This document shows positions 33,742 through 45,800 of a stretch of 64,000 nt of DNA, piece by piece. Within the stretch, counting starts at the first letter, position 1. Each line of letters opens with the position of its first letter. The translations under genes and the position numbers were made by a program. The DNA comes from Octopus sinensis (Eukaryota): the NCBI RefSeq assembly GCF_006345805.1, contig NC_043011.1, forward strand, positions 31,198,464 to 31,262,463. Reading direction: 5' to 3'. The notes below the pieces were generated by a model, which saw only the letters and a program-made list of their open reading frames with translations, searched no databases and was not told the DNA's origin.

Positions 33742-33863
33742 TCAGTTGAGATTCTTTTCCACAATAATTTGTGGTTTAAAATTGACTTCTTTCTTGGCTT
33801 CTTCAAACAGATTTTCAACATGGTCTTGTGGTGCACATCCAATTCTGAAGAATGAAATTTCAC
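33742..33863 (-). CDS. Fusion gene exon 8 (YrdC C-terminus, stop)
   Basis: ttttcag|GTGAAATT; GEISFFRIGCAPQDHVENLF...KNLN*; minus-strand AATAAA at 33690-95. Confidence 0.88.
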
Positions 33864-36800
33864 CTGAAAAATAAACATTCTTTTTAAGATATTTTTCATC
33901 AACAACTTGCTACTACTTTTCATATCAATCAATCTATTATTGCAGATAATTTTTTCATTAATTTTCCTTAGCTAACAAGCCTTATAATATTGCTATTGTA
34001 GAGTTATTTGCCTTGGTTACAAAGATGACACAATCATTGTGTTTACATTTGCTTTTTTCTTTGCTTGTGTGGATTAGATGAGACTTCTATGGCCAGATCC
34101 TCTTCTTGATACCAACCCTTGTTTCCTAAGAAGGTACTTTATTCTATTTGTTTTAGAACATCAATCTGCCAAGCTGCTAGACATTGTTCATGGGTGGCAT
34201 AAATGTCACTGCTGTTAAGCAATGTCCATGCAAAGACAGTCTCACACAGACACACACGTGTGTCTGTGTGTATTTGTATATGCACATGCAAATATGATAG
34301 GTAATAGGCTTCTGTACAGTTTTCATCTACAAAATTTCAAGGTATTGGTCAACCCGAGGTTGTACAAGATGTTACTAAAATGGAATCAAACTTGAAAATC
34401 ACATACTTGAGCAAACTTCTTAACCATACAGCTAAGATTTTCTAACTAGAAAGGGTATGGCCAGGTCAGCCTGTAATGATATGCATAAGATCTGGTCATC
34501 AAATCTAAGTAGAGATTTCAAACTTAAAATCTTCACAGCTACAGTCGAACCAATTCTACTATATGGCTAAGAAACCTGGACGTTATCAGAGAAGCTTGAG
34601 AGGCGGTTGGATGGAACTTACACTCGCCTCCTTATGAGAGCTCAAAATCTCTCGTAGAAGCGTCATCCAACCTAAGTATAAATATATGGGAAACTACAAC
34701 CTGTATCATCTCTTGTGAAAGGTAGAAGAGTCCAGTTTGCTGGACATTGTTGTAGAGTTGAAAACGAGGTAATTTCTACTCTTCCCCGCTGGAAGCCATC
34801 TGCTCACGATACCAGAGGGCGCACACTCTCCTACCCTGATGTAATCTCCAGGGATACAGGCATCCAGCAACAGGACCTCTGTAATGCTATGATGGACCGT
34901 GAAGTCTGGCGTAACATAGTAAATTCCATTGTCTCGACCACGGTCGAACAATGATGATGATGATGATCATCATCATCATTTAACATATTTTATGTGCTAG
35001 CATGGGTTGAACAGTTAGACAATATCCAACAAGCTGCAGAGCTGCATCAGACCACAATGTCAGCTTTGGCATGATTTCTATAGCTGGATAGCCTTCCTAA
35101 CACCAACCCCTTTATGGAGTGTAGTGGTTGCTTTTTTTTGTCTTTGTGACACTGGTCCAAGTGAGTTAAGGAGCATAGGGCTAGTTTTCTGGTTTCCCTG
35201 GTGTATATATTTCTCCTTAGGCAAGATGTTGGTCTGTTGCAGGGTTACTCATTTTTATAGTTGATGAACTGGAGCAAGGTGAAATGAAGTGCTTTGCTCA
35301 AGAATATGTATCACCCAGTCCAGGAATTGAAACCACAATCTTATGATCATGAGTCCAACACCCAAACCACTAAACCAGTGCACCTCTACACTAATAAGCT
35401 ATACCTATAATAAATTTTGAAATCATGACTATATGGTCTGTAGTCCAGCTTCATTGAAGAAATTTTAAAAAATTAACCCACCTCATTGAATGACTTGGAA
35501 TAATAGCACATTTTTTTCCTGGTCATTTGTGGAATTAAAAAGGACACCATCATTTTATGTCCATTTATGTTACTGGCATGAGTTGGGTGGATTACCTTGG
35601 TTGAACAGGTATTTCTAAGAACTTCATTTTCATAACCTTTCAGAAGGTGTTTTATTCTATTTTTGCTTTTCTCATGATGAGAGAGAAGTGTGTTGCAGGA
35701 AACGTTTTTGGACTTGAGAATATCACTTCTGAATATCACTAGGTCTGGTGAAGCAATTAAAAAATTACTCACAAGAGTAGCACTTGTCTTTAACCCTTTA
35801 GTGTTCGCATTATTCTACCAAAATTAATGCTTTTACATCTACTTTGTTTTGAACTAATCATGCATTATCTTGTAGCTATGAGATTTTGATGAGGTAGCTG
35901 TTAATTTTTAAAATGTTATTGTAAGGTTGGTGTGAGAGACCAGATCTGGCCAGTTTGAACATAAAACAGGCAGAATACTTTTGGCCAGATATGGCCGGTT
36001 TAAATGCTAAAGGGTTAAGACTGGTCATAAAATGAAAGTCGCCCACCTACTTTGTTTTGTTAAACTGACTCAATTAAGGAAGAAAACTGCCACTGATTAA
36101 ATGCAATATTTATCTTGAAACCTTCAGATGGCTGGGCTGATTAGGGTGTCAGAAAACTGTCGTTAATCCTGGTACTATGTTAGTACCATAAAGTTTGTCC
36201 TCAACAACATAGTTCACAGTAATGTAGTTCCAATTAGCAATAATTACATTTGCTTGTAATGCTGAATTTAATTCCTCCTATAGATTTTGCCAGAACACAT
36301 AGGGTTTCATTGGTTTCGTTTATTCCCATTCAATCATGGTCTGTAATTTTATGAGAAAATGGCCCCTGTTTTTTCTTTTATGTCTGATCTATTACAAATA
36401 ATGACTTGCTGTTTAAGAAGTACAGTAGTGTCAAAAATATATGTTGATGGTTAATTAAATTTTTTTCATCTCAGGGACTGAACTTTGCTTGGCAGCACAA
36501 TGGTTAGAATAGGAACCAAAGGTTGTCAATTTAGAAAATGGAAGTCAGGTGCTAATCAGACCATATTGAATGACATTAGTTTAATACAATATCACATTAA
36601 ACATGTTGCTTTGACAAGGGATGTGGGAAGCCTCTCTGTGGTTGCATAACCTGCAAGAGATAGCAGCCAAATCTCTCAGTTTCATGTCTTATCATAATTT
36701 TAAAAAAAACATGATAAAAAATTTCTTTGGTCAAATTTCAAATTTTGGCTCAAGGCCAGCAATTTTGAGGGAGGGAGAAGTCAATGATATTGATCCCAGT

Positions 36801-42800: not shown

Positions 42801-45800
42801 CAATCTGTTTCTTAAACGAGGGACATATTCATACGGCACAATGTTTTCACCTCAATAGACGGTCATTGATTGGTTGAAATTGCCGAAATGCAAGAAATTA
42901 AAGATCAAATATCTTACAAACTATAGAATTTTCTCAATAAAGCCAAGAGAAAAAGATGTTTTATAAACACATTCTACCAGTATACGAAGTTTAAAAAGTG
43001 TTTAGTTACGTGGAAATTATTTTAAAAAACTGCCGTTCAAACCGAAAAGATCCCAGTTTATCTCTGTCTCAGTGTTTATTACTGACTTTTATGAAGTACA
43101 CTTGAGCCGACGCTCAACTAGCTAGAAATAGCAACCAAAATCTCTCCGCTTACACGCTTTTTTGTTAAAATGGAAGAACTTACTGGATATTCTTTTCTAT
43201 ACTAGGCACAAAATTTTTGGGGAGGATAACAGTCGATTAGGTCGATGCCAGTATGCAATTGGTACTTAATTTATCGACCCTGAAAGGATGAAAGGCAAAG
43301 TCGACCTCGGCGGAATTTGAACTCAGAACGTAGCAGCAGACGAAATACCGCTAAATATTTCGACCGGCGTGCTAACCGTTTCTGCCAGCTCACTGACATA
43401 GAACTTATTAGATATTGTAGACCTGGGTCGTCTAGACTAGAACATCTTTAGACATAGGTCTGCTTCATCAGGACTGACTCAATTACTAAATAACATTTAC
43501 ACGTATATATCTATAAAACAGAATGGATCTTTCGTTTTGACTCGAAATAGTGTAAACAATGATTTCGGTGGTTTCCGTGACCACACGTGACAACTTGACA
43601 ATTCACTTTGGATATCTTCGTGACCTCCGAAAATTTGCGGATTTTACATACACACATGAAGCAGGTAAGAACAAATATGCAAGGCTTTTTGCTGGCATAA
43701 TTTCGTTATATCTATATTCCACAACACATAAATACATAAAAACAGAGCACGCACACTGTCACGGAGGTCACGAAGATATCCGAAGAGAATTGTGGAGTTG
43801 ACACGGAAACAACCGAGGTCTTGTTATAGTTTTGTCGAGTTAAAACGAAGGAACGCCAAAAGAACTAAAGTAAAATTCAATTAATAACGAAATAAAATTG
43901 AAACCAACCTAGACTTTCAAGAACCATTTCATGATGTATACTGTCTTCTCCGCCACTTGGGTTAGCCGAACTCAAAGCGACGGGACCCGTCAGTTGTGTG
44001 AGATAAGCCAAAATCGAAGAGTCAGGAATCCGAATACAAACACTTTCTTTGTTTCCTATATACTCCGTAGCATCACCAAGTCCTAGATTTAGCAACCATT
44101 CGCCTTTTGGTACCACACAACTTATTTTACCAGGGTAGCACAAGCGCATAAAGGCCCAAAGAAGATCGCAGAAATCGGGTTTCGCTTCCTCCAGTTGCTT
44201 TAGATTTGACAAACAAATGCAAATTGGTTTTTCAGACGGTCGTTCTTTGACTGTGTAGATGTTTTTAATAGAATTTGGTAACCTACAAGAAGCTGCTAGT
44301 GCATATACTGTATCGGTTGGTACACCGACTATTCCTCCATCAGTTAATATTTTGGCGGCTTTCAGTATAGCAGAAGTTCGTTTTGAGGTAAATGTTGGAC
44401 ATAACTTGGTTAATCTAGCCGGTGGCTGGCTAGCCTATAATGAAAATGGAATATTTTATCAGTAATAAAAAAATATCAAATTCAGCTAAATTCACTTAGA
44501 TATATTATTAACATTTTTTTTTAGTTAAAGCCAAAAATTACGAGAATACGCGATACGAAACTAGATTATCACGATTTAGAATCTTTATAGGCCTAGCATA
44601 GATTACATTCAAATGTATGTGCTAGAGAGAAAGAGTAAATATAAGGGATCTTTTCGGTTTGAACGGCAGTTTTTTCTAGCGGTGTCATATGAAATTGTCA
44701 CCCATAATTATGACCCTAGTATCGATCTATTGCCTTTCAATCTGTTTTAGGGTTAGGGTTAGGGGTGGGGGAAGGGTATCTATTTTTCTTCAGAAATGTA
44801 AATAAACCCAATCTGTTTCTTAAATGAGGGACATATTCATACAGCACAGAATGTTTTCACCTCAATAGACGGTCGTTGACTGGTTGAAATTGGCGAAATG
44901 CAAGAAATTAAAGACCAAATATCTTACAAACTATAGAATTTTCTCAATAAAGCCAAGAGAAAAAGATGTTTTATAAACACATTCTACCAGTATACGAAGT
45001 TTAACATTTTTTAGTTACCTAGAAATTATGTTAAAAACTGCCGTTCAAACCGAAAAGATCCAATATAAGTTTATATTGGACATAATAAGTTTTTAAAAGT
45101 AACTTGAAACGTGACAGTCAAAATGTATATTAAGTGATCTTATTAAGGGGCTTTCTATCCAGACAATGTTTACAACCATACTAAGTATATTTACATACAA
45201 CAATAAACTGACTTATATTGGGTTTCAAAGGAAATGTAACAGTTGGCAAAATCGATTGTGTTAAGTTCAAATGACTGAACGTTCGCAGGTTCGTATTACA
45301 ACACAAGTGCAAGACAGCGTTTTATAAAAAACCAACTCTCAGTGACCCAATTCATTATATTAAAATAGTTAATAACAAGGAACCATAGTTTACTGTCATA
45401 AATTAGTTGGACACTATACTCGAGTGTTTGGTTAACGCGTGTACTCGACGAGAGGTTTTTAATCCTGCCGTGACAATTAGGAGGCGAAAGGAAATTACGC
45501 CAGTATGTACGATAAAAAGAGGAAATCTGTAGCTTCAACGATTCACTATATTAAAATCTGTTTTATTACTTGAATAGACTGAATTGATCATCATTTTATT
45601 GAAAAGTATTCAACCAAGTGATACTTTTCTACATGTAGTGACACACACAAGTGTGTACATATATATATATATATATATATATATATATATAGTATGGGTG
45701 ATTGAACCCTGATGCTTTAATTCTTCACATAATTATCACGCTATATCTACTATGTTAAAGTCCTATTTAACACTTTGTCATGTGTATGGCATGTGATACA

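Follow-up and report, generated by a model that had tools for sequence, protein, structure and literature searches.

We analysed a 64,000-nucleotide stretch of the Octopus sinensis genome (NCBI RefSeq assembly GCF_006345805.1, contig NC_043011.1, forward-strand positions 31,198,464 to 31,262,463), referred to below as the window and numbered from its first letter, with a focus on a YrdC domain encoded on the minus strand. Translation of 33742..44434 on that strand yielded three coding pieces, which, once their GT-AG introns are removed, form a continuous frame for a 244-residue YrdC/TsaC-type domain. These pieces form the C-terminus of a larger gene of eight exons (54800..33742, minus strand), whose upstream exons encode SatP/AceTr-like membrane repeats. 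The gene holds a single uninterrupted open reading frame (ORF) of 853 amino acids (aa), and its splice sites are canonical throughout, all introns being GT-AG. The exons are as follows:

54644..54800, minus strand: exon 1, with the start ATG at 54800, the first helix of AceTr-like repeat 1 and the motif YAEPGALGL (counterpart of NPAPLGL)
50643..51747, minus strand: exon 2, the remainder of repeat 1, a K-rich loop (EKKKNTKYAEP) and the complete repeat 2
50268..50545, minus strand: exon 3, helices 1-3 of the diverged repeat 3; the same exon order is seen in L001, a contig of another mollusc
49874..50071, minus strand: exon 4, helices 4-5 and the beginning of helix 6 of repeat 3
48386..48474, minus strand: exon 5, helix 6 of repeat 3 (IVSLYGTFAGMTNGTLQGHLVPLG), counterpart of the SatP C-terminus IYLAMGEVLNEQFGRTVLPIG; joined to exon 6 in the model XP_014769501.1
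43909..44434, minus strand: exon 6, a linker of ~30 residues followed by the first two thirds of the YrdC domain (VPTDTVY, KER, IRIPD, SAN-PSG)
39993..40079, minus strand: exon 7, the YrdC strand with STVV (counterpart of S181)
33742..33863, minus strand: exon 8, the YrdC C-terminus with R-I-G (counterparts of R195/G197), a terminal helix and the stop codon

Position 44434 is the first base past a canonical acceptor (ttcattatag/GCT). Since no ATG exists between this acceptor and the YrdC domain, exon 6 must be spliced to upstream exons. At the other end of the model, exon 1 closes with the donor G/gtaagt, and the N-terminus it encodes agrees with those of the Lottia, Elysia, Candidula and turtle orthologues. 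The ORF ends ~30 residues past R-I-G with the stop codon TGA at 33744..33742 (minus strand).

Public gene models of this locus are truncated or split. The closest database protein to the YrdC domain, XP_014769501.1 of O. bimaculoides (98% identity over 100% of the query), is a RefSeq model of 283 aa that begins at an internal methionine (MNFVTALLAG) in exon 4 and joins exons 4 through 8; it thus covers the 853-aa gene in truncated form. Together with the Xenopus model of 243 aa and the fish gene 'si:ch211-153b23.3', which lacks a PF01300 hit, such split models could be taken to mean that an AceTr-like and a YrdC-like gene are mere neighbours and were never one protein. This is extremely improbable. 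Exon 6 opens at an acceptor without an upstream ATG, an in-frame ORF of 853 aa results, and the RefSeq model itself links repeat-3 exons to YrdC exons. Moreover, order and strand are kept from molluscs to frog, being identical in L001 (a 5.3-kb contig), in L002, from a second probable cephalopod, and in L003, from Xenopus tropicalis, and AlphaFold2 (AF2) models of vertebrate proteins of ~900 aa have been published (PMC13316224). Annotated proteins from Lottia, Elysia, Candidula, Pinctada, Chelonia, Limosa and Scophthalmus also combine the same membrane part with YrdC. That is, the YrdC region is the C-terminal module of one eight-exon, 853-aa gene on the minus strand.

The Xenopus entry XENTR_v10020754 (243 aa) and the B10K bird entries named 'YRDC protein, partial' are likewise split, or have repeat-1 exons joined to repeat-3 exons. 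In the X. tropicalis locus (CM004450.2), the annotation also places a gene of 662 residues on the other strand over the entire fused-gene locus (2933..18789 of L003), which is possibly an annotation artefact.

The YrdC domain itself was matched by the Pfam family PF01300 with an E-value of 2.8e-34 (118.6 bits versus a gathering cut-off of 25.1). An earlier note on this DNA had listed six motifs, and all of them were found in the minus-strand translation: VPTDTVY (44323..44303), K-E-R (44248..44240), IRIPD (44035..44021), S-A-N (43969..43961), STVV (40026..40015) and R-I-G (33846..33838). The two deviations listed with them, YAL for YGL and CIRIP for GIRIP, are both real, and the Sua5 C-terminal domain (PF03481) indeed gave no Pfam hit. 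A mitochondrial presequence is absent as well, since the domain lies internally in the 853-aa ORF.

To describe the pocket we mapped its residues onto the numbering of Pyrococcus abyssi Sua5 (Pa-Sua5), with residue roles taken from PMC6004061 and PMC10321239. The octopus domain retains T33, T35, K56, R58, R121, S143, N145, S147, G148, S181, R195 and G197. Across the family, T33, T35, K56, R58, R121, S143, N145, S147, G148, S181 and R195 are invariant, bar one T33S, in 16 of 16 YrdC domains of this fused type, from molluscs to birds. The KxR/SxN tetrad, which corresponds to K672, R674, S765 and N767 of the full protein, is unchanged in all 16, and the threonine and bicarbonate (HCO3-) contacts (T33/T35, R121, S181 and R195) are all retained. 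Two further positions differ from Pa-Sua5: N62 is replaced by K, as in many TsaC and YRDC proteins, and H67 by C, as in animal YRDC. The sole family-wide change at the mapped positions is G38A, the YAL deviation, which YciO has too. The residue preceding the IRIP arginine is variable within the fused-type family, and the C-for-G deviation is thus not informative. Judged from its residues, the domain is shown to have a predicted pocket that is complete for ATP, threonine and bicarbonate; the earlier statement that the catalytic motifs are kept extends to the whole fused-type family.

The best relatives of the domain among solved structures, in sequence and in fold, are Sua5/TsaC2 proteins (P. 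abyssi 6F87, Thermotoga maritima 9DSV, S. tokodaii 3AJE). The sequence relatives are genuine L-threonylcarbamoyladenylate (TC-AMP) synthases, with Pa-Sua5 at an E-value of 1e-17. With an AF2 model for the O. bimaculoides protein, 98% identical to the domain (predicted local distance difference test, pLDDT, 91.7), among the best Foldseek matches was again Pa-Sua5 (6F89, E-value 4e-18), and T. maritima TsaC2 (9DSV) superposed at 2.1 A (root-mean-square deviation) over 223 columns. These two ranked above YciO and E. coli TsaC, and far above HypF (~1e-9) and TobZ (3e-2). The octopus domain differs from two-domain Sua5 in lacking the PGM/HY linker and the SUA5 domain (PF03481).

Two other identities were considered. 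E. coli YciO (1K7J, against which the YciO sequence was verified) shares the YAL motif and is likewise a paralogue of the enzyme for N6-threonylcarbamoyladenosine (t6A). However, YciO lacks the KxR/SxN tetrad in our alignment, having R/L for K56/R58 and M, P and T for N145, S147 and S181, whereas the octopus domain retains all five residues; a YciO-like identity was rejected on the retained tetrad. A carbamoyltransferase of the HypF/TobZ type was rejected on the much weaker fold matches and on the absence of a partner Kae1-like domain.

Compared to housekeeping YRDC/TsaC (TC-AMP synthase, EC 2.7.7.87), the octopus domain shares the single-domain fold, the KxR/SxN tetrad, the threonine and bicarbonate contacts and, with animal YRDC, the C at the H67 position. 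It differs by an identity of ~26-31%, by G38A, by an insert of six residues before [IV]R[IV]P, by the signatures SANPSGxxDSxHH and GHK..G..CDG, by its membrane tether, by the lack of a presequence and by its place in a separate clade. In a neighbour-joining tree (203 columns, 200 bootstrap replicates), the fused-type YrdC domains were monophyletic with 100% bootstrap support, and the canonical YRDC of animals and choanoflagellates with 99.5%. The octopus domain did not group with the housekeeping animal YRDC in this tree. Identity between the two clades is only ~26%, and the octopus domain shows 29-31% identity with the canonical YRDC of vertebrates versus 50-58% with their fused-type domains. 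The tree bears out the earlier note's view of the domain as a paralogue.

This separation matters for the reading in which the domain is the octopus's only TC-AMP synthase and serves t6A synthesis in tRNA. No stand-alone octopus YRDC was found in our searches: no cephalopod canonical YRDC was among 30 named representatives in the search with chicken YRDC, and with a human YRDC query the best 120 of 4671 matches were all from mammals, birds or reptiles, with no cephalopod among the matches listed. However, in the exhaustive search with chicken YRDC, combined with look-ups by name, canonical YRDC turned up in the gastropods Lymnaea, Plakobranchus and Biomphalaria, the brachiopod Lingula, the annelid Capitella and the echinoderm Amphiura. 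Both copies occur in Plakobranchus ocellatus: P0294 is canonical, with 55% identity to chicken YRDC and 26% to the octopus domain, and P0052 is of the fused type, with 79% identity to the Elysia fusion. Birds as a group carry both types as well, although both in one bird species were not seen among the matches listed. With the fused clade distinct from the canonical one, we consider a housekeeping role of the octopus domain very improbable.

Neither is the domain decaying. Between the octopus and L002 (81% amino acid identity, 227 codons), the proportion of nonsynonymous differences (pN) was 0.128 and that of synonymous differences (pS) 0.78, which is saturated; omega is therefore roughly 0.1 or less, with synonymous sites saturated. 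YrdC is also the most conserved module of the 853-aa protein, as identities between the octopus and other molluscs or vertebrates illustrate:

YrdC, 50-65%
repeat 1, 38-61%
repeat 2, 25-51%
repeat 3, 34% or less

Furthermore, over the split between molluscs and vertebrates, identity is higher for the fused type (58%) than for canonical YRDC (52%). A relic of a duplicated YRDC, for which the two motif deviations are all that could be cited, has a practically negligible probability given the intact ORF, and the selection comparison, the tree and the conservation of the modules refute it. Thus, our results show that the fused family separated from housekeeping YRDC long ago as a paralogue and is kept under strong purifying selection, and they support the interpretation first offered for this sequence, a probably active or ligand-binding paralogue and not a relic.

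The search for canonical-type proteins also returned at least 13 representative clusters of 820-985-aa proteins with YrdC at the C-terminus (P0387, P0388, P0390, P0398-P0400, P0403, P0404, P0407, P0409, P0410, P0412 and P0419). A PDE12-like Exo_endo_phos region was present at the N-terminus of the Pfam-scanned P0387, P0388, P0390, P0398, P0399 and P0404, and also of P0409. Other fusions combine YrdC with RUN and Rubicon (P0357) or with HAD (P0306).

The N-terminal 612 residues of the octopus protein consist of three tandem, collinear SatP/AceTr-like six-helix repeats of ~200 residues each. In Pfam scans of the membrane segments alone, the octopus repeats gave no PF01184 match above the gathering score, whereas orthologues from Elysia (27.9 bits) and Chelonia (35 bits) exceed the cut-off of 25. 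The family profile matched SatP (5ZUG) over its full length with an E-value of 1.2e-8. Using hhalign, we obtained 92.5% for repeat 1 with SatP, 95.8% for repeat 2 with SatP and 97.7% for repeat 1 with repeat 2. In addition, the AF2 model of the contiguous exon-2 translation (pLDDT 83.3) matched SatP structures only in Foldseek, with target-normalised template modelling (TM) scores of 0.76-0.79. By profile, hhalign and Foldseek, repeats 1 and 2 are AceTr-type six-helix units in homology and fold. Repeat 3 is far more diverged, its best hhalign match to SatP being 59.9% with an E-value of 8.7e-5.

In comparison to SatP/Ato1 (AceTr, 5ZUG and 5YS3), the octopus protein shares the six-helix repeat fold and the motifs GGxxQxxAG...W and ...LPxG, but the repeat is triplicated in one chain, falls under the Pfam cut-off, and has a degenerate NPAPLGL and an altered pore constriction. 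The NPAPLGL motif is represented by AEPGALGL, AEPMGMGF and a degenerate third copy, and the F-L-Y constriction, compared at its Phe and Tyr positions, is not kept as a whole. In all three repeats, an Asn (residues 27, 236 and 448, in exons 1, 2 and 3) aligns with the constriction residue Phe17 of SatP (Ato1 F98), while the Tyr position is occupied by F, Y and Y in repeats 1, 2 and 3. This hints that the pore may be wider or more polar than those of acetate channels.

As fusions of this kind have already been described, the architecture cannot be called new. Ghasemi et al. (bioRxiv 10.1101/2025.05.26.656167; iScience 2026, PMC13316224) reported "vertebrate ATOs" of ~900 aa with three Gpr1/Fun34/YaaH domains and a C-terminal Sua5/YciO/YrdC domain, published AF2 models of them, found them in all vertebrate lineages but mammals and proposed a dimer that gives a six-domain ring. 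The octopus protein shares their architecture and approximate length (853 versus ~900 aa), is 50-58% identical to them in YrdC and 31-39% in the membrane part, and falls into one clade with them. Our results thus show that the octopus gene is an orthologue of the metazoan ATO-YrdC fusion, with three AceTr-like repeats and a C-terminal YrdC domain in one 853-aa chain. We found no paper connecting YRDC and cephalopods, and Octopus does not occur in the supplements of PMC10321239 and PMC13316224; literature mentions of the zebrafish gene name si:ch211-153b23.3 were found in expression tables only. New here are the mollusc member, the conservation of the pocket, the constraint, the separation of the clades, the presence of both copies in one gastropod and the shared introns; catalytic residues and selection were not analysed in PMC13316224.

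Our data also bear on the origin of the family. In PMC13316224 the fusion is regarded as essentially vertebrate, and horizontal transfer is suggested for the few protostome sequences, whereas we found full fusions in cephalopods, gastropods and one bivalve. In our tree the fused-type vertebrates were monophyletic at 99%, with the molluscs falling outside. Of the three octopus introns that lie within the YrdC region or adjoin it, two are at Xenopus positions, namely at the helix-6/linker junction and at the junction before the last exon, and the third is displaced by 2-3 residues. Taken together, the tree, the full mollusc fusions and the shared introns favour vertical descent from an early bilaterian gene, and horizontal transfer does not fit. 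The broad distribution in molluscs and the shared introns thereby correct the published suggestion for the protostome copies.

Several gastropod models (Batillaria, Pomacea, Gigantopelta and other contigs; P0002, P0003, P0004, P0014 and P0024) have the last YrdC exon joined in frame to a second YrdC start. This suggests tandemly duplicated fused-type YrdC units in gastropods.

What might a YrdC domain do behind three pore-like repeats? AceTr proteins have both termini in the cytosol, and the termini of Ato proteins are implicated in gating (PMC8379382). Following 18 helices, the YrdC domain should thus be cytosolic, and, lying ~30 residues past the last pore helix, it would be placed at the mouth of the pores. 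We propose that it would retain TsaC-type chemistry, in which ATP is used to adenylate an N-carboxy-amino acid, or else a small carboxylate or carbamate related to it, and pyrophosphate (PPi) is released. This chemistry would be coupled to anion flow, in that bicarbonate or carboxylate from the pores would be consumed or an imported substrate trapped, and two paired protomers would yield a six-pore ring as in SatP. A coupling of YrdC and channel was also raised in PMC13316224. The pocket, apparently complete for ATP, an amino acid and bicarbonate, favours a working adenylating enzyme over a pure ligand-sensing gate, and together with the strong constraint it argues that the YrdC module is working and not decorative. 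We give an even chance to the reading in which YrdC is an active adenylating enzyme and its reaction is coupled to the flow of anions through the channel. Its more specific form, in which the AceTr pores feed bicarbonate or a small carboxylate into the tethered, active TsaC-type pocket or export a labile product, is distinctly less probable, and we regard it as unlikely.

The alternative is a sensor or gate, in which YrdC would bind ATP, threonine or both (or some other small ligand), would not turn them over productively and would regulate the opening of the AceTr pores. The implication of fungal Ato cytosolic termini in gating (PMC8379382) is in line with it, as is the short linker that tethers YrdC directly behind the last pore helix; the ligand pocket would be equally conserved in a sensor, and G38A is common to the poorly active YciO. 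However, the residues contacting PPi, the alpha-phosphate, threonine and bicarbonate are all retained, among them those that mutagenesis of Sua5 showed to be required for chemistry alone (PMC6004061), and conservation exceeds that of the housekeeping enzyme. We therefore consider a sensor or gate possible, if somewhat doubtful.

Several points weigh against a working enzyme coupled to anion flow. One is G38A, which is present in all fused-type sequences and common to YciO. The domain scored 115.1 bits against NCBIfam TIGR00057, under the cut-off of 123.2, whereas canonical YRDC of chicken and Plakobranchus reached 143.1 and 137.6 bits; since YciO obtained 265 bits, this cut-off says little about function. 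The active site of E. coli YciO has been described as largely conserved, yet its in vitro TC-AMP rate is 10^4-fold below that of TsaC and it is not isofunctional in vivo (PMC12506659), so conservation of an active site is no proof that the function in vivo is the same. Finally, with the constriction Phe replaced by Asn in all three repeats and repeat 3 highly diverged, the transported species need not be a carboxylate.

With regard to the profile itself, TIGR00057, an 'equivalog' for L-threonylcarbamoyladenylate synthase, gives genuine animal YRDC much lower scores (138-143 bits) than E. coli YciO (265 bits), even though YciO is reported not to be isofunctional.

The window as a whole is repeat-rich with a G+C content of 31-42%, as expected of an animal genome, and contained no Rfam family and no tRNA within its 64 kb. 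On either side of YrdC exon 6, introns 6 and 5 each hold one unit of a 418-bp direct repeat (42650..43053 and 44646..45061, respectively; 92.6% identity); the two are probably copies of one dispersed element. A family of dispersed ~400-bp repeats occurs on both strands with 74-92% identity between copies, two of which lie in introns of the gene; its pseudo-ORFs gave no Pfam match. The copies are located at:

15783..16192
20747..21158
22511..22893
23062..23417
38662..39054
48574..48951
63719..63963

A 621-bp inverted repeat (3241..3855 and 4523..5139, 97.6% identity) has a spacer of ~670 bp and internal tandem sub-repeats. Within intron 6, long TA/CA/GA dinucleotide and AAT/ATT-type runs (41000..41950) give rise to long spurious ORFs on both strands, and intronic ORFs contained no Pfam domain.

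The octopus gene thus belongs to a family of conserved animal membrane proteins that extends from molluscs to birds and was lost in mammals. If its pores indeed serve a tethered, active TsaC-type pocket, non-mammal animals would have a membrane-sited source of TC-AMP or of another acyl- or carbamoyl-adenylate, and its role would lie outside the synthesis of t6A in tRNA.

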